Below are positions 41,890 through 64,000 of a stretch of 64,000 nt of DNA, one piece after another. Each line of letters opens with the position of its first letter. Within the stretch, counting starts at the first letter, position 1. Position numbers and translations under genes: made by a program. The notes under the pieces were generated by a model. That model had not been told where the DNA came from and did no database searches. It saw only the letters and a program-made list of their open reading frames with translations. Origin of the DNA: Salpingoeca rosetta (taxonomy: Eukaryota > Protista > Choanoflagellata); contig JAWQFM010000033.1 of the NCBI GenBank assembly GCA_033442325.1, positions 531,669 to 595,668 on the forward strand, written 5' to 3'.

Positions 41890-42056
<167 letters not shown>

Positions 42057-42070
42057 ACACATGCGTGCAG

Positions 42071-42678
42071 CAAGGCTGACGGGCAGCTGACGACTGCCGA
42101 GCGCTTTGCAACAGCCATGACCGCGGGCGGGTGCGGTGGCATAGCCGCACGACCTCGACTTTTCTGTGCAGCAGACCATCTTGGAGCCTGAGGTGGCACT
42201 CAAGCGGTTCGCTTTCATCGGCAACGCCCTTGTTCGCATCATCAGGGAGGAAGGCATTGGCAAGTTGTACTCTGGGCTCGGGCCCAACGTGATTCGCGCC
42301 ATGCTCATGACGGCGGGGCAGCTCGCCTCATATGACACGTTCAAGCAGCTGCTGCTGACAACAACTGGCGGCCTGTTCAAGGACAACCTCGTCACCCACT
42401 TCACGGCGTCGACGCTTGCCGGTGGCGTTGCCACGCTGCTGACACAGCCGGTCGACGTGGTGAAGACGCGCGTGATGGCAGCGACCCCGGGCACATACAG
42501 CAGCGCGCTGCAGTGTGCGGGCATGACGCTCAAGCAGGAAGGACCGCTCGCCTTCTTCAGGGGGATGGTGCCTGCGTTTACGCGTCTGGGCCCACAAACG
42601 ATCCTCACGTTTGTGTTTCTGGAGCAGTTGCGGCGATTGCACTACTACCTCACGCATGGTGATGACAAGCCCGTCTGA
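42071..42678 (+). pseudogene. Mitochondrial dicarboxylate carrier (SLC25A10/DIC-like) 3' fragment, copy 1, with an internal replacement
   Basis: Near-identical to 54826-55444, with carrier motifs EGIGKLYSG, GQLASYD, PVDVVKTRVM and GPLAFF. Bases 42143-42217 replace the segment encoding GTPMDVCNVRMQ...NYKH. Confidence 0.85.
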
Positions 42679-42775
42679 TGGAGGCAAGGGGGGGGGCGTG
42701 GTTGATTGGCGTGGTGATGTGTGTGTGTGTGTGTTTGTGCATGTGTGTGTGTGTGTCGTGCGCGTCGTTGCTTGT

Positions 42776-43131
42776 NNNNNNNNNNNNNNNNNNNNNNNNN
42801 NNNNNNNNNNNNNNNNNNNNNNNNNNNNNNNNNNNNNNNNNNNNNNNNNNNNNNNNNNNNNNNNNNNNNNNNNNNNNNNNNNNNNNNNNNNNNNNNNNNN
42901 NNNNNNNNNNNNNNNNNNNNNNNNNNNNNNNNNNNNNNNNNNNNNNNNNNNNNNNNNNNNNNNNNNNNNNNNNNNNNNNNNNNNNNNNNNNNNNNNNNNN
43001 NNNNNNNNNNNNNNNNNNNNNNNNNNNNNNNNNNNNNNNNNNNNNNNNNNNNNNNNNNNNNNNNNNNNNNNNNNNNNNNNNNNNNNNNNNNNNNNNNNNN
43101 NNNNNNNNNNNNNNNNNNNNNNNNNNNNNNN
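42776..43131. other. Assembly gap (N run)
   Basis: N characters. Confidence 1.
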
Positions 43132-44428
43132 ACACACACACCGAGACACTTGGTTTCTATTGATCTTTTTGGTTTCTGTCTATCAACGCTTGAGGCCCTT
43201 GGGCCGCTCACATAGCATTCAAGCACTCAGTAGCAGACATTCACTCCCTCACCCAGTCATGTCACCCACTCGTGCAAGCGCCTGTCTGAAATGAGCACAC
43301 TTTCGGTTTTGATTGCTTCCCTCATCTCTGAGCACTGGGAATGATGTAAGATTTCAACAAATTTTCCCCAATGACGAGAAGTTGCAAAAGATTCGAGGGT
43401 GATTTAATGATCCCGCCGCGATTCAATTTCGCTGTTCACCAGTACCACCAACACGAGCCAACCAACCAACCGCACGAAGACTACGAAGGATGGCAAGCAC
43501 GAGAGGCAGCTTCGATTCGGCGTCAGGCGGGCTGTGGCGCATCGACGAAGAGGTTGTTGTATGCAGAGCTGTCGTGTGTCTCTCAGTCTCTGCCTCTCTT
43601 TCATTTTCTATCCCCTTCCGTCTCTCAGTCTCAGTCTCTCTTTCGCTTTCTGTTTCTCTGTCTCTGTCGTGCTCTTTCTGTTTTGCTCTATCTTGCTCTC
43701 TTGCTTATGCGATCGTCCCTTGGAGTGATTGAGCACACACTTGTGTCTTGTGTCGTCTGTGCCCGTGTGTCGACCCTGACGTTGGTTGTTGTTGTCGATT
43801 CCCGCCTTCCTCGTTTTCTTTCCACACCGTCTGTGTTACTGTGTTTCCCACTCTTTGCATCCTGTACGGAAGAACAGAGAGAGCATGTGTGTGTGTGTGT
43901 GTTGATGCGTGTATGTGTATGTGCATATCTCTCTGTGGTGCATCTTCACTTCACACACAACCTTAGTGTGGCTCACGTTCCTGTTTACCTGTGCCTTTGT
44001 GCCCGCCTTTGTCTTGGCCTAGTCCTGTTCTGACACCAAGTCGGGCAGCATGAGCTCTGAGACATTCAACGCAGTACGTACAAAGGAATGCGACCATGCT
44101 GCTGTGTTGCACGTTCACTTGGCCACAGCACACACACACACACACACACTCCCCTGCCCATTGCATCTCACTCAAACACAACACAACATGTTCCTTGCTT
44201 TCTGCCTGCTCTGTGCGTGTCGTGCCTTGAATCGTGTGCTGTTGCACATAAGCAGGCCTCAAGGGTAAGCGGAAACAGCAGGTGTTCATGGTCTGTCGAG
44301 TACAAGCTGGATTGCATGATACACGTGTTCGTCCTGCCAGCAGAAGCAGACCAGCATCACGATCGTCGCCACCACAGCGCAACCACCATCACAGCGCCGT
44401 TATCATTGCTGCGCCGCTACACAGCTGC

Positions 44429-44463
<35 letters not shown>

Positions 44464-45086
44464 NNNNNNNNNNNNNNNNNNNNNNNNNNNNNNNNNNNNN
44501 NNNNNNNNNNNNNNNNNNNNNNNNNNNNNNNNNNNNNNNNNNNNNNNNNNNNNNNNNNNNNNNNNNNNNNNNNNNNNNNNNNNNNNNNNNNNNNNNNNNN
44601 NNNNNNNNNNNNNNNNNNNNNNNNNNNNNNNNNNNNNNNNNNNNNNNNNNNNNNNNNNNNNNNNNNNNNNNNNNNNNNNNNNNNNNNNNNNNNNNNNNNN
44701 NNNNNNNNNNNNNNNNNNNNNNNNNNNNNNNNNNNNNNNNNNNNNNNNNNNNNNNNNNNNNNNNNNNNNNNNNNNNNNNNNNNNNNNNNNNNNNNNNNNN
44801 NNNNNNNNNNNNNNNNNNNNNNNNNNNNNNNNNNNNNNNNNNNNNNNNNNNNNNNNNNNNNNNNNNNNNNNNNNNNNNNNNNNNNNNNNNNNNNNNNNNN
44901 NNNNNNNNNNNNNNNNNNNNNNNNNNNNNNNNNNNNNNNNNNNNNNNNNNNNNNNNNNNNNNNNNNNNNNNNNNNNNNNNNNNNNNNNNNNNNNNNNNNN
45001 NNNNNNNNNNNNNNNNNNNNNNNNNNNNNNNNNNNNNNNNNNNNNNNNNNNNNNNNNNNNNNNNNNNNNNNNNNNNNNNNNNNNNN
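44464..45086. other. Assembly gap (N run)
   Basis: N characters. Confidence 1.
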
Positions 45087-45441
45087 CACCACCGCAGCCA
45101 CCAACCATCACCACAGTGCAACCACCACCACCACCACCATCACGGTGCAATCACCACAACACGTGCTGTGATTTCGGCTTCCGCCACGATGTTCTAGGAT
45201 GTTGCTCATACCCGCACCCACCTCATGTTCTCGTGCATAATATCCACCCCCGTCTTTTCTTTTCAGAGAGACTTGAAGCGAACTGAAACCCGCGTGGCCT
45301 CCAAGGTTCTGCAATTGCGCATGCACAAGCACACATTGACACAGCACTGCCTTACGATGCAGCAACCGAATCCCCCACCCCCTCACACCCCCCGCCAAGA
45401 ACGGGTATACCTTCTAACCCCACCGCAACACAACCATCGCA

Positions 45442-47494
45442 ATGCCAAGGGTTCCTTCTAACGGGAGCAGGCAGTTGCAAGTATGCGCGCAGCAGCAAGG
45501 CGGCGGCAGCAGTAGCAGCAGCAGCAGGGTGGACGACATGCTCCATCTGCTGGAAAGATGGACCCTGGATGAAGACAGTGCAAAGTATGCCAAAGTGCTG
45601 CGTGTGCAGCGAGAACTGGAAGATGACTTGCAGGCCGCACAACAACAGCTTGCCGCTTTAAAGGCGGGACATGACGAGATCAGGGCGATGCATGCGCAGG
45701 CACAGGTGGAGAGGATGAAGGCGGAGGTGGAGAGGGTGAAGGCGGAGGTGGAGAGGGTGAAGCGCCATGTTCAGCGAGTGAAGGAGATGGAGGACCTGTT
45801 CAAGAAACGCATCAATGACAAGAAAGGCGAGATCCGCAATGCACGGCATGAAAGATGGAGGACAGAACTGACAGGACCCGGCAACGGAGAAGCGGTTGCA
45901 GCGGCGGAGACGAAGGTGAAAGAGAAAGAGCGGGAATTGGCCGTGCTTGAGGAACAAAAGAAGATATGGCGCAAGCAGATGGAGGAGGAGAGGAAGAACG
46001 GAGAGGAAGAGAGGAAGAAGTGGCAGCAACAGCAGCAGCAACACAAAGTGTGGGTGCGCGCGTTGACGACATTGCTGCAGGCGGCAGGTGAGCCGCTGCC
46101 ACACACCACAAGTGCCGAGCACCTGTGGACTGTGGTGTCGCAGGTGGTGGACGACGCCCTGGCGACAGCGTGGGAGGCCGGCCTTGTGCCCGCTGCTGGC
46201 CCGCCCCGACTGGCCACTATCACTTTATCTGCTCTCCAAGCTATCGAGAAGCGCGTTGCGGAGAAGAAGATCAGCTCACCTGCCGCGATCAGAGACGGTA
46301 TGCTGTCATCCACCTCTTTGTGTGTTGTCGTGCGGATGTGGTGATGAAGACGGCCCTGCTTGTTTTGGTTGTCTTGATGACACAAGGTCAAGCGTGCACC
46401 TGTTTGCGCCTGTGTGTGTGTGTGATGTTTTGCGTTGATGTCACACAGCGCACAACACGTTTGCTTGTATCGTCGTTGCCTTTGTCACTGCTACTGCCAC
46501 TGTAATTATCGCTGCCTTTGTCACTGTGTCGCAGTTACTGTCGTTGGCATTTGCATTGGTAGCCTCCACCACCATAGTCACGCATGCGACACATTCACGC
46601 TTGTTTTGACACCTCTCCGCCCCTCATGCGCGCTGATTGCACTGCTGTGTGTGTGTGTGTGTGCGTGCAGAATTCTTTCTTCACGACGCCACCCAGCAGC
46701 ATCACCAAGCCCGAGAAGAACCCGTATCTCGTCTACTGGCCGGACAATGCCCAGTTCTTCACCGACATATGGCGAGAGCCACTCGCAAAACAGGTGCTGC
46801 AATGCAATGACATCCGTCGCCGCTGCGCTGTGTGTGCGGGCGGTGCTGGTGGAACAGTAGTGCTGTGCTCATTTCTGTGAACGTGCATGTGCGTGTGTTT
46901 GTGCGAGCGAGAATATATGAGTGCGACTGTGTGCTTGTGTGTGTGTGTGTGTGTGTGTCATGTGCTTGGTGGCATTATCATCACCACCCATCACTAAACG
47001 ACGTGCCGCCATATGTGCACTCCTCCCTATGCCTCTCACCAACCGCTCGTCCCGCACGCCTTTGTGTCAACACACTCGTGTGTATGTGCATGTGTGCGTG
47101 TGTGCATGCGTGCTTGTTTTCGCGTTTCCAGTTTGAGCTGAAGGCTGATGACATCACGCCGCAAGCAGTGATTGCAAAGATTCACGAAATACCAGTGCTG
47201 GAGGTGTCCAGCAGCCGTGGGCCCCGCCCCAGGGGGCGCCAAGTGACGCTTGGCCTGCGACAAGGTAAGGACGTGGCGAAGACTGTTGTTGCCTGTGTTT
47301 GCACTGCTTTCAGTTTTAGGTGCACGTGCAGACACGTGTACTTGGCCTTGGAGCGTTTGTCAACGTCGTCATCATCATGTGGTGTTTGGTCGTGTATTGC
47401 CGATGTGTGCGCAAGCGCACATGAAGGGTTGTGATGTGAGATGTGATTGTGACACCATCGTGCAATGCGTGCACGCTTACATCTCACCCCTGCC

Positions 47495-47528
<34 letters not shown>

Positions 47529-49536
47529 GCTTGCTCGCAGGTCTGCCTTTGCCAAAAGCACTGCCAACAGGATGGTCCAATGAAGCGGAGATGTGCACCG
47601 ATATCGCCGAGCACCTTCGCGCCACGGCTGCGCACCTCGACCCCGGTGTCACGTTCCCGAGTGAGGTCCCAATCATGACGTACGTTGTGCGGTGCATGTT
47701 GTGTCCAGGCGTTGGAGGGGTGGGGAGTGGGTGTTTGCTGTATCCTTGTTTCCGCTCTCTTGCGTGTCCTGTGATGCTTGTGATGCTGCAAATGCCGGTT
47801 TCTTACAGGGAACCTGCCCGTGCTCTTGTCGCGCTTGCCGCCTTGCGTTGGCCAGGTTCAAGCCAGGCACCCGCCCCAAAACAGACATTGTGATGGTGGA
47901 CCGTCACACAAACACAATAGCGGCCGTGTTTGAGCTCAAGCTAGGCGAGGATGCTGATTCGCTTGGCCAGTTGGCAGCGTACGCACACCACGCGATTGTG
48001 GCGAACGTGCTTTGCATTGCAGGCGAGCACGTGCCTCTGGAGGAGCTGCCCCTGCTCGCTGGGCTGGCGATGTTTGGGCTGCGTGTCAGCCCGGTGCAGA
48101 CCACCGTTGTTGAGTTTATGGTGGCCAACGCCGGTGGAGTGGTGAAGGTGGTTGCCCACAACATCATCTCCATGCCGACGAAGAACATTGGGCAGGCTGC
48201 TCTGGCCATTTCCTGCTTTGCGGACTTCCTGCACGCGAAGTACGCCCACGCCATCAAGCAGAACACCAAGCATGGCAGCGACTTTGCGCTGAATGTCATG
48301 AAGCCCCATGTGCTGCACTTCAACCCCGACAGCGGCAAAGGTGTGTTGTTTGCTGCTTGCTCGTCTGCGTCTGTATGTGCGTGTGTGTGCCTGCGTGTGT
48401 ATGTGTGCACATGTGTGTGTGTGTGCATGCATGCGCCTGTCTCTCTGCCATCTCTCTCTGCTTCTGTCTGTGTGTGTGTGTGGTTGAAAGGCGGTCACTG
48501 TGCAGTGTTCTCTCTGCCATCTCTCTCTGCTTCTGTCTGTGTGTGTGTGTGGTTGAAAGGCGGTCACTGTGCAGTGTTGTATGCACAATTGCGCCCGTGC
48601 CTGTGCTCGTGTGTGGTGTGATTCACATGATGCTGGTTGTGCTTATCGCTGTGCTGTCAGCAGAGGCACCGAAAGTGCTCAGTTCCGTCGCCAACAAAGG
48701 GAGCGGATACGTGTGCAAGTTCATCAAGACTGGGCACCGTGCTGGCGACTTGTGTGCTGAAGAGATTGAGAACATGTGGAAGTACGTCAACGGGCAACGC
48801 GCTTGCAGTCGCATCCCCGCCACCAACAGCACCGCCACCACCAACAGCAAGAGCAGCACCACGAACACCACCAGCAGCAACATCATCAGCAGCAGTGGCA
48901 ACGACACGCAGATGATTGCGGTGCCCCACCTCGGGTCGACCCGCGCTCACATTCACGAACAGCACGTGGTGCAGCTCTGCAACAGCTTGTTTCTCCTGTC
49001 AGCGGCTGGTCTCGTTCACCATGACATTCGCTGCGCCAACGTGGTCGTGAGCGGCGACAAAGCCTCTCTTATCGACTTCGAACTGGCTGGCTGTGACGCC
49101 GATGTCATGGAGGCAGCGGAACTCGAGCCGGCTGAGGTTGCTCTTCGCACGGACCTGCCTGAGCGGTCAGCACGCATCCGTGCAGCTGGTGNNNNNNNNN
49201 NNNNNNNNNNNNNNNNNNNNNNNNNNNNNNNNNNNNNNNNNNNNNNNNNNNNNNNNNNNNNNNNNNNNNNNNNNNNNNNNNNNNNNNNNNNTCCGGTCTG
49301 CGCTCTACAAGAGGGCACCGCAGATGGCACACAGGGCAACCAAGGACGCCATGCTGGCCGCGTTGGAACAGCTCGAGCAGCAGCAGCAGCAGCAGCAGGG
49401 GAAGGGGAAGCAAGGGGAGAAGGAGAAGCAGCAGGGTCATGTCGTGCTGGTCGGGATGAACCCGACGCTGCCGCAGTCGTGTGATTTGCTGGGCCGCATC
49501 AAGAAGGTCATCAAGGACATCCCGCTGTACGACTGA
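45442..49536 (+). CDS. Coiled-coil + PD-(D/E)xK nuclease + protein kinase gene (Crinkler/RHS-effector-like), copy 1; apparent +1 frameshift in exon 2 and an N gap
   Basis: Exons ~45442-46297, 46671-46793, 47132-47264, 47541-47679, 47856-48340 and 48661-49536. Nuclease motifs NEAEM...SEVPI...PKTDIVMVD...VFELK...LGQLAAY; kinase motifs YVCKFIK, LVHHDIRCANVV, LIDFELA. Carries an extra T at about 46677 relative to copy 2. Confidence 0.8.
48441..48578. repeat. About 69-bp direct tandem duplication in an intron of effector copy 1 (single in copy 2)
   Basis: ctctctgccatctctctctgcttctgtctgtgtgtgtgtgtggttgaaaggcggtcactgtgcagtgtt occurs twice. Confidence 0.9.
49192..49291. other. Assembly gap (100 N) inside the kinase exon of copy 1
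   Basis: N characters; the matching stretch in copy 2 (~62160-62219) is only about 60 bp. Confidence 1.
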
Positions 49537-50312
49537 GCTCGACGTCTCCGCGCGCTTGGGAGACAGGGAGCCATGTGCTCGTGTGTGTGTGTGTGCATGT
49601 GTGTGCATGTGCGTGATTGATTGTAATTGCGCGGGGAGTGCATGTCTACACGTGTAAGGGAGGGAGAGAGAGGGGGGGGGGAAAGACGTGTGGAGGACAG
49701 TGACAGTGTGTTTGCGTGCATGTGCATGTGCACACGATGCTGTTCTTTGCTTTGCTTTGCTTTGCTTTGCTTTCTTACACGTCCATATGTGTCTGCAATA
49801 CACTGCATAAGCTACAGTGATGTATGTGATCACGAATAGCGCTTTGCGGTGAACAGAGCACAGAAATGGAATGTGTGTGTGTGCGTATGTGAGGGATGTG
49901 TGTGTGTGTGTGTGTGTGTGCGTGTATGTGTTTGAAGGACTGTTCTATTGACTGTCAGTCTGCCGTTCTGCGTTGTCGCATTGTCGTTGTCGTTGTCGGT
50001 GATGAGAAGTGATGTGAACAACCACTCGACCACGCTGATGTTGATGGTCGGCGTCACAGTCACTTGTGCTTGACAAGGGAATGGTTGGGTTGTGATTGTT
50101 AACGAGTGGCTTCCCAGCACTGCCTCTGCTGCACCGCTCGTTGACACGGGTGCCCTGGTCGTGAGGGTCGTCGGTGGGCGATTGAAGTATTGGTTGTGTG
50201 TGCCTGTGTGCGGTGGTGGTGGTGAGGAACGTGTCGTGTCACAACGTCACCATGCTGGGTGAGAGACAGGCGTTGCATTCATTGCTGAGAAATTTTATGT
50301 TGACTGGGAAGG

Positions 50313-51148
50313 ATGATGATGATGAGACGCAGGATGATGGTGGTGGCGGTGGTACAACTGCTCGTGTTGATGTGTTGCGGTGTGGCGGCGTCGCATGTGT
50401 CTTCTGGTAGGAAGGCGTCCATCTTCTTTCTGCTCACGGATGACCAAGACGTCGACATGGGCTTTGTGTCCCAGCCCAAGCTCGTCAGCCTGTGGCAGAA
50501 GCAAGGCGGTGTGTGTGTGTGTGTGCGTGTGTGTGTGTGCGTGTGTATGAGAGAGTGTGTGTGTGTGCGTGTGTATGAGAGAGAGTGTGTGCGTGTGTAT
50601 GAGAGAGTGTGTGTGCGTGTGCATGTGCGTGTGTATGAGAGAGTGTGTGTGTGTCTGTGTGTGTGTGTGTTTGCAGCTGTAGCTGAGGCTATGTCAAGCT
50701 GTATGTCAAGCTGTATGTCAAGTTGTATTGTGGTGTGCGTGCATGCGTTTGAATATGTATTTCTACTTCATGTCTGTGTACCTATCTGTCCACCCGTGCG
50801 GCTGTCCGCTTGCCACGCACTTGCGCACTGCCGTCCTCCCTTCCTCCCCCCCCCCCCCCATCCACGGGGCTACCGGACGTCAAGGCTGGCCCTGCCTCTC
50901 TTTCTCTGTGCACAGTCTGACACACCACTGGCCTGCTCCTGCGTTGCCCTTGCAGCCACATTGGAAGCAGCCTTTGCCAGCACACCTGTGTGTTGTCCTT
51001 CACGCGCAGGCATCCAGACGGGAAGGTACATCCACAACGTCCCCATGACCAACAACTCCATCCCGGGCAATTGTTCCAGCACTGCGTGGCAGCAAGGCGC
51101 CGAGAGGCACAACATCGGCCACCTCATGAAAAAGCCGGTGTGTGTGTG

Positions 51149-54178: not shown

Positions 54179-55444
<1,266 letters not shown>

Positions 55445-56261
55445 TGGAGCAAGGGGGGGTTTGATTGGCGTGGTGATGTGTGTGTTTGTGTGTTTGTGCA
55501 TGTGTGTGTGTGTGTCGTGCGCGTCGTTGCTTGTTGGTTGTGTTTGCAATGAAGAGGAGTTGCTGTTGCGCTGGGCTGTGGCCCACTGTTGTGCTGCGTC
55601 GTGCGCACGTGACGTGGCCTTGCCTTCCTTCCTGTTGGGACGCTGCTCTCTCAGGGGATCGTTACTCTCTGCCATATGCCCGTTTGCTCTGTTTGATGTC
55701 ACATCACAACATTACTTTGTGCATCTGACAGCATGATGGGAGTAAAAGTGGCCATGGATTAGTTGCGGATGACAGCAGCAACAGCGCAGAGTGGTGGGGG
55801 GGAGGGAGGAAGGGCTACACATACACACACACACACACACGAAGGAGATATACACACACGCACACACACACGGAGACACTTGGTTTCTATCGATCTTTTT
55901 GGTTTCTGTCTGTCAACGCTTGAGGCCCTTGGGCCGCTCACATAGCATTCAAGCATTCAGTAGCAGACATTCACTCCCTCACATCACCCAGTCACCCACT
56001 CGTGCAAGCGCCTGTCTGAAATGAGCACACTTTCGGTTTTGATTGCTTCCCTCATCTCTGAGCACTGGGAATGGTGGAAGATTTCAACAAATTTTCCCCC
56101 AATTACATACACCACACAAGCGAAGATTCGAGGGTGATTTAATGATCCCGCCGCGAAATTCAACGAAGACCACGAAGGATGGCAAGCACGAGAGGCAGCT
56201 TCGATTCGGCGTCAGGAGGGCTGTGGCGCATCGACGAAGAGGTTGTTGTATGTGCTCTGTG

Positions 56262-56345
<84 letters not shown>

Positions 56346-56474
56346 AGCTGTCGTGTTTCTCTCAGTCTCAGTCTCTTTCATTGTCTCTCTATCCCCTGTC
56401 CTAATCTTCCGTCTCTCAGTCTCTGTCTCTCTTTCGCGTTCTGTCTCTCAGTCTCTGTCTTGCTCTTTCTGTTT

Positions 56475-56684
56475 CGCGCGCTCTATCTCCCGCGCGCGCT
56501 CCATGTTTCCTTCTCGCTCATTCGATCATCTCTTGGAGTGATTGAGCACACACTGGTGTCTTGTGTTGTCTGTGGCCGTGTGTCGACACTGGCGTGCTTG
56601 CCCTTGTCGATTCCCGCCTTTCTCACTTTCTTTCTACTTTGTCCACATCCTTGTCTCGCTCTGCTGTTCTCACACACACACTCT

Positions 56685-56770
<86 letters not shown>

Positions 56771-56968
56771 CTGTTTCTGTTTCTGTTTCGTGCGCTCTCT
56801 GTTTCGTGCGCTCTCTGTTTTGCGCGCTCTATCTCCCGCGCGCGCTCTATGTCTCCTTCTCGCTCATTCGGTCATCCCTTGGAGTGATTGAGCACACACT
56901 TGTGTCTTGTGTCGTCTGTGCCCGTGTGTCGACACTGGCGTGCTTGCCCTTGTCGATTCCCGCCTTCC
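56475..56968. repeat. Direct repeat pair of about 145 bp (56475-56620 and 56822-56968) around a (CT)n tract, specific to unit 2
   Basis: gcgcgctctatctcccgcgcgcgctc...ggagtgattgagcacacact...gtcgattcccgcctt appears twice; unit 1 has one related copy (~43710-43810). Confidence 0.85.
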
Positions 56969-57978
56969 TCGTTTTCTTTCCACACCGTCTGTGTTACTGT
57001 GTTTCCCACTCTTTGCATCCTGTACGGAAGAACAGAGATTGCTTGTGTGTGTGTGTGTGTGTGTGTGTTGATGCGTGTATGTGTATGTGCATATCTCTGT
57101 GTGGTGCATCTTCACTTCACACACAACCTCAGTGTGGCTCACGTTCCTGTTTACCTGTGCCTTTGTGCCCGCCTTTGTCTTGGCCTAGTCCTGTTCTGAC
57201 ACCATGTCCGGCAGCATGAGCTCTGCGACATTCAACGCAGTACGTACAAAGGAATGCGACCATGCTGCTGTGTTGCACGTTCACTTGGCCACAGCACACA
57301 CACACACACACACTCTCCCCTGCCCATTGCATCTCACTCAAACACAACACAACATGTTCCTTGCTTTCTGCCTGCTCTGTGCGTGTCGTGCCTTGAATCG
57401 TGTGCTGTTGCACATAAGCAGGCCTCAAGGGTAAGCGGAAACAGCAGGTGTTCATGGTCTGTCGAGTACAAGCTGGATTGCATGATACACGTGTTCGTCC
57501 TGCCAGCAGAAGCAGACCAGCATCACGATCGTCGCCACCACAGCGCAACCACCATCACCACAGCGCCGTTATCATTTCTCCTCTGCAACACAGCTGCTTG
57601 TGTGTGTGTGTGTGATGTTTGCATTCACCCTCTGTGCTCACCCACACTCTCTGCCCAACCCCTTTCAACCACCACAACGCCGTTCTGTCGACACCAGCAG
57701 GCTTCACGCAACAGCGTGGTACGTCAACCACCGACCACAGTCACCACAGACAGCAACAACCATCGCAGCCACCAACCATCACCACCACTACCACCACCAC
57801 GGTGCAATCACCACAACACGTGCTGTGATTTCGGCTTCCGCCACGATGTTCTAGGATGTTGCTCATACCCGCACCCACCTCATGTTCTCGTGCATAAAAC
57901 CCACCCCCCGTCTTTTCTTTTCAGAGAGACTTGAAACGAACTGAAACCCGCGTGGCCTCCAAGGTTCTGCAATTGCGC

Positions 57979-60900
57979 ATGCACAAGCACACATTGACAC
58001 AGCACTGCCTTGCGATGCAGCAACCGAATCCCCCACCCCCTCACACCCCCCGCCACAGACCGGTATCACCTCTTACCCCACCGTCACAACACCATCGTCA
58101 TGCACAGGCATCCATCATAACGGAGGCAGCCGCGCGGTTTGCGACCATTACGCAGCTGCAAGAAGTATGCGCGCAGCAGCAAGGCAGCAGCGGCAGCAGC
58201 AGCAGGCTGGACGACATGCTCTATCTGCTGGAAAGATGGACCCTGGATGAGTGCAGCTCAATGATTGACAGACTGCAGCACGTATTGGAGGAGAAGGAAG
58301 AGGGTGTGCGGGCCGCACAACAACAGCTTGCGGCTGCACAGGCGGAGCATGACAAGGTCTGGGCGGCCCTTGCGCGGGAGCAGATGGAGAGGATGATGGC
58401 GGAGGTGGAGAGGGTGAAGCGCGATGCTGAGCGAGTGAAGCAGCAACAACACAGGCAGCAGCGCATGCGCGACAGGCAGCAGCGCATGCGCGACAGGCAG
58501 CAACGCATGCGCGACAGACACGACAGACAGCAACGCATCCAGGAGGCGAGGAACGTGAATGCACAGCGGATCGGGGACAAGAGAAATGAGCTCACGCACG
58601 CACAGGCCGAAGCTGGTTTGGCATCGCCGACCGACCAACAGGCATTTGCAGCGGCGGAGAGGAATGTGACTCAGTTGGAGGAACAGCTTGCCACGCTGCT
58701 GGTGCAACGTGATAACCTGCGCAGAGCGATGGAGAAAATCATCAAGGAGAATGAAGAAGAAAGGATGAGGGATGAAGAGGAGAAGGTGCGGGATGAAGAG
58801 GAGAGGGTGAGGGAAGAAGAAGAAAGGATGAGGGAAGAAGAGGAGAGGGTGAGGGATGAAGACGAGAGCACAGGGGAAGAAGAAAAACGGATGAGAGAAG
58901 AAGAAAAGAGGAGGAGGGATGAAGAAGAATGGACGAAGAAGTGGCAGCAACAGCAACACAAAGTGTGGGTGCGCGCGTTGACGACATTGCTGCAGGCGGC
59001 AGGTGAGCCGCTGCCACACACCACAAGTGCCGAGCATCTGTGGACTGTGGTGTCGCAGGTGGTGGACGACGCCCTGGCGACAGCATGGGAGGCCGGCCTT
59101 GTGCCCGCCGCTGCTGGCCCGCCCCGACTGGCCACTATCACTCTATCTGCTCTCCAAGATATCGAGAAGCGCGTTGCGGAGAAGAAGATCAGCTCACTTG
59201 CCGCGATCAGAGACGGTATGCTGTCATCCACCTCTTTGTGTGTTTTCGTGCGGATGTGGTGGTGAAGACGGCCCTGCTTGTTTTGGTTGTCTTGATGACA
59301 CAAGGTCAAGCGTCCACCTGTTTGCGTGTGTGTGTGTGTGATGTTTTGCGTTGATGTCACACAGCGCACAACACGTTTGCTTGTATCGTCGTTGTCACTG
59401 TCACTGCCATTGCCACTGTAATGATCGCTGCCTTTGTCACTGTGTCACAGTTACTGTCGTTGGCATTTGCATTGGTAGCCTCCACCACCATAGTCACGCA
59501 TGCGACACATTCACGCTTGTTTTGACAATTCTCCGCCCCTCATGCGCGCTGATTGCACTGCTATGTGTGTGTGTGTGCGTGCAGAATTCTTCTTCATGAC
59601 GCCACCAAGCAGCATCACCAAGCCCGAGAAGAACCCGTATCTCGTCTACTGGCCGGACAATGCCCAGTTCTTCACCGACATATGGCGAGAGCCACTCGCA
59701 AAACAGGTGCTGCAATGCAATGACATCCGTCGCCGCTGCGCTCTGTGTGTGCGGGCGGTGCTGGTGGAACAGTAGTGCTGTGCTCATTTCTGTAAACGTG
59801 CATGTGCGTGCATGTGTGTGTGCGAGCGAGAATATATGAGTGCGACTGTGTGCTTGTGTATTTCTGTGCTTTTTTGTGTGCTTGTATGTGTGTGTGTGTG
59901 TGTGTGTCTCATGTGCTTGGTGTCATTATCATCACCACCACCACTAAACGACGTGCCGCCATGTGTGCACTCCTCCCCATGCCACTCACCAACCGCCCGT
60001 CCCGCACGCCTTTGTGTCAACACACTCGTGTGTATGTGCATGTGTGCGTGTGTGCATGCGTGCTTGTTTTCGCGTTTCCAGTTTGAGCTGAAGGCTGATG
60101 ACATCACGCCACAAGCAGTGATTGCAAAGATTCACGAAATCGAACAGCTGCTGGTCTCCAGCGCCGACCCACACTGCCCCCGCGAGGACCGAGTGACGCT
60201 TGACCTACCACAAGGTAAGGACGTGGCGAAGTCTGTTGTTGCCTGTGTTTGCACTGCTTTCAGTTTCAAGTGCACGTGCAGACACGTGTACTTGGCCCTG
60301 GAGCGTTTATCAGCGTCGTTATCATCATGTGGTGTTTGGTGGTGTATTGCCGATGTGTGCGCAAGCGCACATGAAGGGTTGTGATGTGAGATGTGATTGT
60401 GACACCATCGTGCAATGCGTGCACGTTTGCATCTCACCCCTGCCTATACACACACACGCACACGCACACACACACACACACACACGCACACACACGCACA
60501 CACACACACACACATACACACACACACACACTACACACCGCGCGCTCGCAGGTTTGCCTTCACCAAAACTGCTGACAACAGGATGGGCCAACGAAGCGGA
60601 GATGCGTACCGATATCGCTCAGCACCTCAACGCCATGGCTTTGCGCCTCGGAGCCTGGGTCACGTTCAACAGTGAGGTCCCAATCATGACGTACGTTGTG
60701 CGGTGCATGTTGTGCCCAGTCGTTGGCGGGTGTTTGCTGTATCCTTGTTCCCGCTCTCTTGCGTGCCCTGTGCTGCTTGTGGTGCTGCGAGTGCCGACTT
60801 CTTACAGGGAACGTGCCGTGCTCTTGTTGCGCTTGCCGCCTTGCGTTGGCCAGGTTCAAGCCAGGCACCCGCCCCACAACAGACATTGTGATGGTGGATG

Positions 60901-62458
60901 GTCGTACAAACACAAAAGTGGCCGTGTTTGAGCTCACGCTAGGCGAGGATGCTGACTCGCTTGGCCAGTTGGCAGCGTACGCACACCACGCGATTGTGGC
61001 GAACGTGCACCGCATTGCAGGCGAGCACGTGCCTCTGGAGAAGCTGCCCCTGCTCGCTGGGCTGGCGATGTTTGGGCTGCGTGTCAACCCGGTGCAGACC
61101 ACCGTTGTGGAGTTTATGGTGGCCAACGCCGGTGGAGTGGTGAAGGTGGTTGCCCACAACATCATGTCCATGCCGACGAAGAACATTGGGCAGGCTGCTC
61201 TGGCCATTTCCTGCTTTGCGGACTTCCTCCACGCGAAGTACGCCCACGCCATCAAGCAGAACACTGAGCATGGCAGCGACTTTGCGCTGAATGTCATGAA
61301 GCCCCATGTGCTGCACTTCAACCCCGACAGCGGCAAAGGTGTGTTGTTTGCTGCTTGCTCGTCTGCGTCTGTATGTGCGTGTGTGTGTATGCATGTGTGG
61401 GTGTGTGCATGTGTGTGTGCCTGCGTCTGTATGTAGTATGTGTGTGTGCATACATGCGCCTGTCTCTCCGCCCCCTCCTCTCTCTGCCTCTCTCTGCTTC
61501 TGTTTGTGTGTGTGTGGTTGAAAGGCGGTCGCTGTGCAGCGTTGTATGCACCATTGCGCCCATGCCTGTGCTCGTGTGTGGTGTGATTCATATGATGCTG
61601 GTTGTGCTTATCGCTGTGCTGTTAGCAGAGGCACCGAAAGTGCTCAGTTCCGTCGCCAACAAAGGCAGCGGATACGTGTGCAAGTTCATCAAGACTGGGC
61701 ACCGTGCTGGCGACTTGTGTGCTGAAGAGATTGAGAACATGTGGAAGTATGTCAACGGGCAACGCGCTTGCAGTCGCATCCCCACCACCAACAGCAAGAG
61801 CAGCACCACGAACACCACCAGCAGCACCACGAACACCACCAGCAGCAACATCATCAGCAGCAGTGGCAACGACACGCAGATGATTGCGGTGCCCCACCTC
61901 GGGTCGACCCGCGCTCACATTCACGAACAGCACGTGGTGCAGCTCTGCAACAGCTTGTTTCTCCTGTCAGCGGCTGGTCTCGTTCACCATGACATTCGCT
62001 GCGCCAACGTGGTCGTGAGCGGCGACAAAGCCTCTCTTATCGACTTCGAACTGGCTGGCTGTGACGCCGATGTCATGGAGGCAGCGGAACTCGAGCCGGC
62101 TGAGGTTGCTCTTCGCAGGGACCTGCCTGAGCGGTCAGCACGCATCCGTGCAGCTGGTGACGAGCGAGTGAAACGCCACATCGAGGATGACTGGATTGCC
62201 ATGTTCTACGTGTGCGTTCTCCGGTCTGCGCTCTACAAGAGGGCACCGCAGATGGCACACAGGGCAACCAAGGACGCCATGCTGGCCGCGTTGGAACAGC
62301 TCGAGCAGCAGCAGCAGCAGCAGCAGGGGAAGGGGAAGCAAGGGGAGAAGGAGGAGGGCCATGTGGTGCTGGTCGGGATGAACCCGACGCTGCCGCAGTC
62401 GTGTGATTTGCTGGGCTGCATCAAGAAGGTCATCAAGGACATCCCGCTGTACGACTGA
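57979..62458 (+). CDS. Coiled-coil + PD-(D/E)xK nuclease-like (ExK changed to ExT) + protein kinase gene, copy 2; frame intact
   Basis: Exons 57979(or 58015)-59215, 59585-59706, 60082-60214, 60552-60690, 60854-61338 and 61626-62458 splice in frame with GT-AG. Motifs PTTDIVMVD...VFELT...LGQLAAY, HHDIRCAN, IDFE and EDDWIAMFY. Confidence 0.85.
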
Positions 62459-63253
62459 GCTCGACGTGTCCGCGCGCTTGGGAGACAGGGAGCCATGTGC
62501 TCGTGTGTGTGTGTGATTATGTGTGTGCATGTGTGTGCATGTACGTGATTGATTGTAATTGCGCGGGGAGTGCATGCCTACACGTGTAAAGGAGGGAGAG
62601 AGAGAGAGGGGGGGGGGGAGAGACGTGTGGAGGACAGTGTGTTTGCGTGCATGTGCATGTGCACACGATGCTGTTCTTTGCTTTGCTTTGCTTTGCTTTG
62701 CTTTGCTTTGTTTTCTTACACGTCCATATGTGTCTGCAATACACTGCATAAGCTACAGTGATGTATGTGATCACGAATAGCGCTTTGCGGTGAACAGAGC
62801 ACAGAAATGGAATGTGTGTGTGTGCGGATGTGAGGGATGTGTGTGTGTGTGTGTGTGTGTGCGTGTATGTGTTTGAAGGACTGTTCTATTGACTGTCAGT
62901 CTGCCGTTCTGCGTTGTCGCATTGTCGTTGTCGTTGTCGGTGATGAGAAGTGATGTGAACAACCACTCGACCACGCTGATGTTGATGGTCGGCGTCACAG
63001 TCACTTGTGCTTGACAAGGGAATGGTTGGGTTGTGATTGTTAACGAGTGGCTTCCCAGCACTGCCTCTGCTGCACCGCTCGTTGACACGGGTGCCCTGGT
63101 CGTGAGGGTCGTCGGTGGGCGATTGAAGTATTGGTTGTGTGTGCCTGTGTGCGGTGGTGGTGGTGAGGAACGTGTCGTGTCACAACGTCACCATGCTGGG
63201 TGAGAGACAGGCGTTGCATTCATTGCTGAGAAATTTTATGTTGACTGGGAAGG

Positions 63254-63448
63254 ATGATGATGATGAGACGCAGGATGATGGTGGTGGCGGTGGTACAACT
63301 GCTCGTGTTGATGTGTTGCGGTGTGGCGGCGTCGCATGTGTCTTCTGGTAGGAAGGCGTCCATCTTCTTTCTGCTCACGGATGACCAAGACGTCGACATG
63401 GGCTTTGTGTCCCAGCCCAAGCTCGTCAGCCTGTGGCAGAAGCAAGGC
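63254..63448 (+). pseudogene. GNS-type sulfatase exon 1, copy 2
   Basis: Identical to the exon at 50313-50507 (…IFFLLTDDQDVDMGFVSQPKLVSLWQKQG). Downstream exons are not within readable sequence. Confidence 0.8.
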
Positions 63449-64000
63449 GGTGTGTGTGTGTGTTCGTGCGTGTGTGTGTGTGTGTGCGTGTGTATGAGAG
63501 AGTGTGTGTGCGTGTGCATGTGCGTGTGTATGAGAGTGAGTGTGTGTGTGTGTATGAGAGAGAGTGTGTGCGTGTGCATGTGCGTGTGTATGAGAGAGAG
63601 AGTGTGTGTCTGTGTGTCTGTGTGTGTGTCTGTGTGTGTGTGTGTGTTTGCAGCTGTAGCTGAGGCTATGTCAAGCTGTATGTCAAGCTGTATTGTGGTG
63701 TGTCTGCCATGCGTTTTGAGTAGGTATTTCTACCTCAAGTTCTGAGTACCTACCAGCCCACCCCGTGCTGCTCGCTCGCGTGGAAAGCAGTTGGGCACAT
63801 GCCTTGCGCACAGTCTGTGTTGTACTATGTCACCGAGCTGCTGCTGAGAGGAGCTGTCCCCAGCTCATATTCGTCGTCTCACATTTAAGACAGTTGTCTA
63901 GCATTCATTAGGTGTCGGTGTAGAATCGGTAGGTAGAACGGTGAACGACCATATGGGTGGGTAGGGTGAGGATGGTTGTCAGGGTGAATATGACTAGATG

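Follow-up and report, generated by a model that had tools for sequence, protein, structure and literature searches.

Multigene families that evolve in concert can contain islands of divergence, familiar examples being the wtf drivers of Schizosaccharomyces pombe (cited via PMC7032740), the dimorphic blocks of Plasmodium surface antigens and the major histocompatibility complex (MHC). Here we describe a pattern of this kind in 64 kb of DNA from the choanoflagellate Salpingoeca rosetta (contig JAWQFM010000033.1; this whole stretch is called the window below), which carries two tandem copies of a gene whose product combines a coiled coil with a putative nuclease and an atypical kinase. Both are members of a family whose paralogues, at least seven in number, are distributed over three scaffolds. 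Within a pervasively mosaic background, short coding patches of these genes exist as discrete types that assort independently, and their synonymous sites are far more diverged than the neighboring introns.

Two other systems invite comparison on the grounds of protein architecture, which in this family matches that of toxin-antidote and effector proteins from fungi and oomycetes. The Spok killers of Podospora and other Ascomycota combine a coiled coil that has a variable-length repeat, an unknown region, a PD-(D/E)XK nuclease and a kinase resembling the eukaryotic-like kinases (ELK). Their nuclease is needed for killing and their kinase for resistance; loss of the ExK lysine in Spok3 abolishes killing, and resistance is kept. 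The pairwise homoplasy index (PHI) test indicates gene conversion between Spok paralogues, and a variable N-terminal part has been proposed to set specificity (PMC6660238). As for the Crinkler, or CR-effector, proteins, the account that we draw on describes C-terminal modules, such as that of CRN8, which join a restriction endonuclease to a protein kinase and for which recombination at domain borders was proposed (Zhang et al. 2016, in PMC5289972).

Results

Coding patches more diverged than the introns between them

Self-BLAST of the window reveals a tandem duplication of about 12.9 kb, in which a unit at positions 41933-50803 (+ strand) pairs with 54686-63772 at 78-95% identity in blocks. 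Each unit holds one six-exon gene on the + strand: copy 1, annotated as P0006, and copy 2, annotated as P0003 (gene body 58204-62458), whose open reading frame (ORF) is intact. A third gene copy was not found within the 64-kb window. Splice sites were set by GT-AG rules and reading-frame continuity, and the annotated S. rosetta proteins agree with them.

Most of the gene is nearly the same in the two copies. The p-distance is 0.035, 0.026, 0.051 and 0.081 for introns 1, 2, 3 and 4, respectively, 0.018 for exon 2, 0.039 for exon 5, 0.017-0.022 for the kinase exon and 0.018 for the 3' flank. Two patches depart sharply from these values. The 5' half of exon 3 (47132-47189 in copy 1) has a p-distance of 0.017 and encodes a segment invariant throughout the family, whereas its 3' half, hereafter E3b (47190-47264 in copy 1, 60140-60214 in copy 2), reaches 0.360 (27 mismatches in 75 positions, or 36%). 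The second patch is exon 4, or E4 (47541-47679 and 60552-60690), with a p-distance of 0.197 (28 mismatches in 139 positions, located at 47543-47666 in copy 1). Together, the roughly 215 bp of E3b and E4 hold 55 mismatches between the copies, far beyond chance. Intron 3, which separates the two patches (47265-47540 in copy 1, with a (CA)n tract at 47497-47530), is near-identical between the forms of the gene. Both patches align without gaps at 64-80% nucleotide identity and keep the frame (27 and 28 substitutions, no indels); compensated frameshifts are thereby ruled out as the source of the peptide differences.

A third and larger island occupies the first 580 bp of exon 1, where the coiled coil is encoded. 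In copy 1, exon 1 extends from 45442, the annotated start of P0006, to 46297; the diverged part (45442-46026) contains indels and repeats, and the conserved remainder covers 46027-46297, with nucleotide diversity (pi) values of 0.199 versus 0.032. Copies 1 and 2 share only about 43% of residues in the island, and they differ in repeat number. Exon 1 of copy 2 contains, at 58400-58900, short tandem peptide repeats that are not found in copy 1, a QQRMRDR unit present about three times and an EEER-type unit present many times, and this expansion adds to the divergence of the coiled-coil island.

A preliminary description of the locus had quoted diverging peptides for exons 3 and 4 and set them against the almost identical intron, kinase exon and downstream DNA. 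The peptides are present at the places given for them, and sliding identity together with the p-distances bears out the contrast. As described next, the finding that coding patches exceed adjacent introns in divergence also extends to the other members of the family.

Two cassette types in seven genes

With exon 5 as the query, HMMER found just two proteins among 1.84 billion representatives, an S. rosetta protein of 878 residues and a metagenomic fragment of 163 residues; when the S. rosetta protein served as the query in turn, seven paralogues from this species were retrieved. Besides copies 1 and 2 these are labeled P0001, P0004, P0005, P0007 and P0008. Copy 1, copy 2 and P0008 lie on one strand of scaffold GL832987.1 and P0001 and P0004 on the opposite strand of the same scaffold; P0005 is on GL832984.1 and P0007 on GL832965.1. 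No relatives beyond the seven S. rosetta proteins emerged from a profile search at an expect value (E) of 10 or less. A word search with the kinase ORF gave no match in its length window, which excluded full-length proteins.

Both protein and DNA alignments show that each patch has only two nearly invariant types among the seven genes. Type A of E3b is found in copy 1, P0001, P0007 and P0008, which are identical to each other; type B is found in copy 2, P0004 and P0005, with at most 2 differences in 75 positions (97% identical). For E4, type A is carried by copy 1, P0001 and P0008 (1-3 differences of 135) and type B by copy 2, P0004, P0005 and P0007 (95-96% identical), with some nonsynonymous differences within type B. 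The preliminary description saw only the contrast between an A/A gene (copy 1) and a B/B gene (copy 2). In all 12 comparisons of a type A with a type B gene, the distance is 0.33-0.36 in E3b, 0.23-0.26 in E4 and 0.016-0.08 in the flanking intron and exon segments, so that the coding patches exceed the adjacent introns in 12 of 12 pairs. Family-wide pi tells the same story, with 0.20 in the diverged part of exon 1 (E1a), 0.20 in E3b and 0.14 in E4, whereas introns have 0.04-0.10 and the remaining exons 0.015-0.06. E3b alone contributes 25 consecutive informative sites that share one partition, and its net charge is +4 in type A versus -3 in type B. The dimorphism recurs on three scaffolds and is robust.

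The types of the two patches assort independently, as P0007 demonstrates by joining an E3b of type A to an E4 of type B; the breakpoint lies in intron 3, between the sites corresponding to 47319 and 47425. P0004 returns to an A-like sequence where exon 4 ends on its 3' side. The coiled-coil island separates P0001, copy 2 and P0007 from the other four genes, and the start of exon 5, including the ExK lysine discussed below, as well as further sites in exons 5 and 6 give yet other partitions. Since the partitions differ along the gene, the seven genes represent seven combinations.

Of the four patch edges, three are no more than about 20 nt away from a splice site, and exon 4 is abutted by a (CA)n tract of variable length. 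Type-linked sites reach 30-65 nt into the introns (47317, 47319, 47476, 47479, 47531-2, 47704 and 47709). Conversion mediated by cDNA, which would explain exon-limited tracts, was set aside because of these type-linked intronic variants. No donor of either cassette type was found elsewhere in the window or in six fetched loci (150 kb).

Mosaicism among the paralogues

Recombination among the seven genes was evident in every test applied. A four-gamete test on 176 biallelic informative sites between 46027 and 49190 (about 3.2 kb) gave a minimum number of recombination events (Rmin) of 46; the compatibility of neighboring sites was above that of 1000 permutations (PHI-like p<0.001); and a GENECONV-style permutation detected a significantly long shared fragment in 20 of 21 pairs (p<=0.0005). 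A haplotype block in intron 2 (46880-46912) is common to P0004 and P0007 only, which indicates that the deep blocks are not strictly exonic across the family. The preliminary description had offered patchwise gene conversion from other family members as one of two explanations and named a search for conversion tracts as the means of checking it. This explanation held up well: besides the GENECONV-style result, five further paralogues carry the patch types nearly unchanged, the types assort independently, and the evidence for recombination is overwhelming.

Copy 1 and P0008 are a special case. No difference separates them over a run of 132 consecutive variable sites (45889-46997), nor at any parsimony-informative site between 46011 and about 47900. 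Comparison of copy 1 45889-47900 with P0008 (locus L005, 11600-13620) shows some 1.9 kb of agreement at informative sites followed by divergence; the distance between the genes, which share a scaffold, is about 30 kb. This agreement could result from a conversion tract of very recent date, or else from reads that the two copies have in common in the assembly.

Age of the patches

Substitution rates per nonsynonymous (dN) and synonymous (dS) site were estimated by the Nei-Gojobori method (NG86). For E3b and E4 combined, copies 1 and 2 give dS 0.33, dN 0.31 and a dN/dS of 0.93, the ratio being 1.48 for E3b and 0.68 for E4; the corresponding rates in exon 5 are dS 0.063 and dN 0.033. Over all between-type pairs, E3b has dS 0.31 and dN 0.52 and E4 has dS 0.26 and dN 0.26. 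Across the two sets of estimates, dN/dS is 1.5-1.7 in E3b and 0.7-1.0 in E4 (E4 dS 0.26-0.31, with 20-24% divergence between types). The nonsynonymous excess in the patches is not significant (p=0.44). What stands out is the synonymous component: 14.5 differences in 53.8 synonymous sites of the patches versus 49 mismatches in 1150 intron positions (0.043), a difference significant by Fisher's test (p=1.4e-7). With patch dS at 0.26-0.33 and intron divergence at 0.03-0.08, synonymous sites are 6-10 times more diverged than introns. The transition:transversion counts, 25:30 in the patches versus 197:81 elsewhere (ratio 0.6-1.1 versus 2.4), are consistent with an older divergence.

Because dS in the patches exceeds intron divergence, the patches are old rather than fast-evolving. 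Positive selection on mutations that arose after the duplication would raise dN only and cannot explain these numbers. In its simple sense, the positive selection envisaged by the preliminary description is not supported: the synonymous divergence is itself high, dN/dS is not significantly above 1, and there are just two discrete types in place of a range of variants. Of the two explanations in that description, conversion with mosaic ancestry is the one that the data support.

The encoded protein and its relatives

The patches immediately precede the putative nuclease core of the predicted protein. Exon 5 (47856-48340 in copy 1) would encode the core of a PD-(D/E)XK nuclease, with the motif D(IVM) ... 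E-L-K in copy 1, P0004 and the metagenomic homologue described below. The putative ExK lysine (47937-47939; 60935-60937 in copy 2) is present in these three and replaced by threonine in five of the seven S. rosetta members (copy 2, P0001, P0005, P0007 and P0008). The nuclease exon has no significant match to a nuclease in Pfam, NCBIfam, PADLOC or PDB sequences, the PDB profile search returning noise. An AlphaFold model of the region, built from a six-row alignment, has a predicted local distance difference test score (pLDDT) of 33. The ESM Atlas model shows template modeling (TM) scores of 0.51-0.58 to fungal clusters that include PDDEXK_12, the N-terminal part of FunK1 kinases and some Crinkler members; in one neighboring structural cluster, 17% of members belong to the Crinkler family. 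To judge from the low-confidence AlphaFold model, the exon 4 cassette probably encodes a loop and the first helix before the nuclease core.

Exon 6 (48661-49536 in copy 1) encodes an atypical kinase domain of Bud32/RIO/Kdo flavor and ends with a Q-rich tail and the stop codon. A kinase catalytic loop (H-x-D-x4-N) is present, as is a Mg-binding motif of the DF(G) type, the segment VHHDIRCANV ... IDFE aligning to the HRD...N and DFG motifs of PknB and PknE. APH, RIO1, Pkinase, Bud32, Kdo kinase and PD-T4-6 give weak but consistent hits on the same segment, all below curated cut-offs, and the ESM Atlas neighbors of this exon all belong to the kinase clan, with a Bud32/RIO/Kdo flavor (scores 0.93-0.97, TM 0.60-0.65). 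These features predict a protein-kinase-like fold of the ELK type (Bud32/RIO/Kdo).

Outside S. rosetta, the searches yielded a single relative, on a metagenomic contig of 1761 bp (ENA ERZ27265955, k141_123599; L007) that probably comes from another choanoflagellate. Its nuclease and kinase exons are separated by an intron placed as in S. rosetta, and identity is 32% over 463 residues. This homologue, 32-44% identical, keeps the nuclease motif, as D...E-V-K, and the kinase motif is also conserved. As far as sequence searches can tell, this is an almost orphan family with virtually no detectable relatives.

State of the genes and their surroundings

Reading frames are intact in six of the seven members wherever sequence is present. 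The remaining member is copy 1: its exon 2 (46671-46793) carries one extra T near 46677-46679, reading TTCTTTCTTC at 46671-46680 versus TTCTTCTTC in all six others. With this insertion, exon 2 is no longer in frame with the phase-1 donor of exon 1, and the annotated P0006 bypasses the break by means of an odd insertion of 39 residues read from intron 1. The extra T is either a pseudogenizing change or a homopolymer error. Runs that we took to be RNA hold 0.46-0.53 of the sequence words in 46000-49190, where the exon fraction is 0.535, and 0.91-1.00 of the words in exon 5; these shares indirectly support expression. A further 5' exon of copy 1 is probably located near 44031-44100, because homology with other members begins there. 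In P0008, the family frame is lost about 25 codons before the usual stop (L005, 15100-15200), beside a gap in the assembly; this end may represent low-quality sequence or a truncated copy.

In copy 2, exon 1 extends to 59215 and is followed by exons 2 (59585-59706), 3 (60082-60214), 4 (60552-60690), 5 (60854-61338) and 6 (61626-62458), all on the + strand. Intron 5 of copy 1 contains a tandem duplication of about 55 bp (48449-48560) that copy 2 is without. The introns are rich in GT/CA microsatellites and the sequence is eukaryotic in character. Three gaps filled with N are present in the window (42776-43131, 44464-45086 and 49192-49291), the last of them inside exon 6 of copy 1.

Each duplication unit also contains a C-terminal fragment of a mitochondrial carrier (42145-42675 and 54900-55440; Pfam Mito_carr, E=1e-33), and sulfatase genes accompany several family members (loci L001, L003, L005 and L006). 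The accompanying sulfatase and carrier sequences suggest that the family spread mostly by segmental duplication. P0007 is a dispersed, gene-only copy, whose homology spans window positions 44031 to 49605.

Discussion

Probable concerted evolution with protected coding islands

The explanation that we favor, and consider reasonably probable, is that the family evolves in concert by short-tract gene conversion and that old cassette types are kept in coding islands, probably by selection. Frequent non-allelic conversion over short tracts would hold introns, flanks and most exons within about 2-6% among members. Three coding segments, namely E3b, E4 and the part of exon 1 that encodes the coiled coil, would escape homogenization and persist as two old types (two or three in exon 1) with a synonymous divergence of about 0.3. 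The types would move between genes as whole blocks only, leaving each gene with a combination of its own. Chimeric or homogenized cassettes would be selected against, which would explain why neither type has been lost and why the islands end where the exons do, and the cassette just before the nuclease core would probably set the specificity for a partner or target. The term "specificity region" used in the preliminary description is plausible for the patch, because it lies just N-terminal of the D...ExK core.

Selection against homogenization is the most likely, if unproven, reason why the islands sit in exons. A neutral sequence cannot out-diverge adjacent neutral introns unless it is shielded or imported. 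In addition, all three large islands are coding; the patch edges near splice sites are accompanied by a thin shoulder of type-linked intronic sites; and the charge of E3b is reversed between types. Each of these features points to the elimination of homogenized or chimeric cassettes. Several considerations weigh on the other side. The dN/dS is not significantly above 1, and selection on the cassettes is not demonstrated. A 4:3 split of types among seven sequences could persist by drift, and high divergence alone could block partial conversion through heteroduplex rejection, with no need for selection. Copy 1, with its frame break in exon 2, may be non-functional. Finally, this is a draft assembly with N gaps in a repeated array, and part of the fine-scale mosaicism could reflect merged reads from different copies.

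Import, arms race or artifact

One could also envision a neutral mosaic, in which one or a few conversion events imported short tracts from a much more diverged member, since lost or unsampled, and the tracts were then spread by duplication and whole-block conversion without any selection, protected from partial conversion by nothing but their high divergence. A patch dS of about 0.3 with a dN/dS near 1 and the perfect linkage inside blocks are what this scenario predicts; the (CA)n tract beside exon 4 could terminate conversion tracts, and the intron 2 block of P0004 and P0007 provides an example of a block outside exons. However, import becomes a requirement here, given that a neutral patch would otherwise not exceed neutral introns in divergence, and the 150 kb of fetched loci contain no donor. 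Moreover, none of the three large islands is noncoding, and all but one of the four patch edges fall within about 20 nt of a splice site. The sparse type-linked sites found 30-65 nt into the introns fit the eroded flanks of old islands better than sharp imports. We regard this neutral scenario as rather unlikely.

Much less credible is an arms race, in which new point mutations, favored time and again by positive selection after the tandem duplication, would have produced a hypervariable region. The point estimate of dN/dS in E3b (1.5-1.7), the shift in charge from +4 to -3 and the nonsynonymous differences within E4 type B could all be read in its favor. Yet this model is largely refuted by the combination of dimorphism with an excess of dS, the synonymous sites of the patches being 6-10 times as diverged as the adjacent introns (p=1e-7). 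There are only two types among seven genes, the four genes with E3b type A have the same patch sequence despite their differences elsewhere, and the elevation of dN/dS above 1 lacks significance (p=0.44).

An error of assembly or base calling in a collapsed repeat array seems still more improbable. In its favor, N gaps lie next to the genes in what is a draft assembly, no more than 0.69-0.77 of the words sampled from the copy 1 gene occur in independent runs, and the single extra T in exon 2 of copy 1 resembles a homopolymer error. Against this, both types are found again, almost without change, at loci with unique flanks on three scaffolds, the 27 and 28 substitutions are clustered, free of indels and frame-preserving, at least half of the copy 1 words occur in 17 runs from 9 studies, and the annotated proteins use the same exons. 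Locally targeted hypermutation by a diversity-generating mechanism, suggested by the confinement of high divergence to short coding segments, can practically be dismissed, given two fixed types with almost no variation within types, no obvious base-specific bias and no repeat or template copy nearby in the window and six fetched loci.

Comparison with known systems

The S. rosetta proteins share with the Spok killers the order of domains (coiled coil, nuclease-like and kinase-like), and in both cases a small multigene family undergoes conversion between paralogues. The change of the ExK lysine to threonine in five of the seven S. rosetta members parallels the lysine loss in Spok3. The parallels do not extend to the sequence. 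No match to Pkinase_fungal or SPOK2_N of Pfam was found at E<=10, none to PDDEXK_12, and no fungal relative in two word searches or in the full HMMER search of 1.84 billion representatives; a SPOK2_N cluster appeared solely as a weak ESM feature neighbor (score 0.79). The cysteine/histidine cluster that precedes the Spok kinase (C-x3-C-x13-C-x5-H-x7-H) is not visible in the family alignment. The S. rosetta genes differ further in being intron-rich and choanoflagellate, and neither killing nor drive is known for this family.

The resemblance to the Crinklers lies in the coupling of a restriction-endonuclease-fold domain to a kinase in a modular protein. None of the seven members has a Pfam Crinkler match, and the header of those proteins, a ubiquitin-like domain with LxLFLAK and an HVLVxxP junction, is absent; the N-terminus is instead a coiled coil, and the host is free-living. 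Membership in either family is not established, and the likeness would serve as a lead for function rather than as a classification.

It is tempting to speculate along this lead, improbable as we hold the full proposal to be, that the family corresponds, in a choanoflagellate, to the single-gene toxin-antidote elements of the Spok type. Killing would be due to the nuclease and protection to the kinase; the shuffled cassettes of the coiled coil, E3b and E4 would set the match between toxin and antidote; the seven combinations would act as selfish or incompatibility factors in the sexual cycle; and the members with threonine in place of lysine would be antidote-only. Choanoflagellates are the closest unicellular relatives of animals, and sex and genetics are now tractable in this group. 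If the cassettes do set specificity, they would offer a testable system for the origin of recognition diversity, or of selfish killing, outside fungi.

A close evolutionary parallel is with the wtf drivers, the Plasmodium antigens and the MHC, where conversion likewise homogenizes paralogues except for short, deeply diverged and shuffled coding blocks. In S. rosetta, by contrast, the blocks are strictly of two types, measure 75 and about 125 bp, are split by a homogenized intron and belong to a nuclease-kinase protein. The locus thus presents a known evolutionary pattern in a new variant, within an almost orphan choanoflagellate nuclease-kinase family, and provides a small and clear example of a family that has been homogenized almost everywhere, with a few coding blocks kept as interchangeable alternatives.

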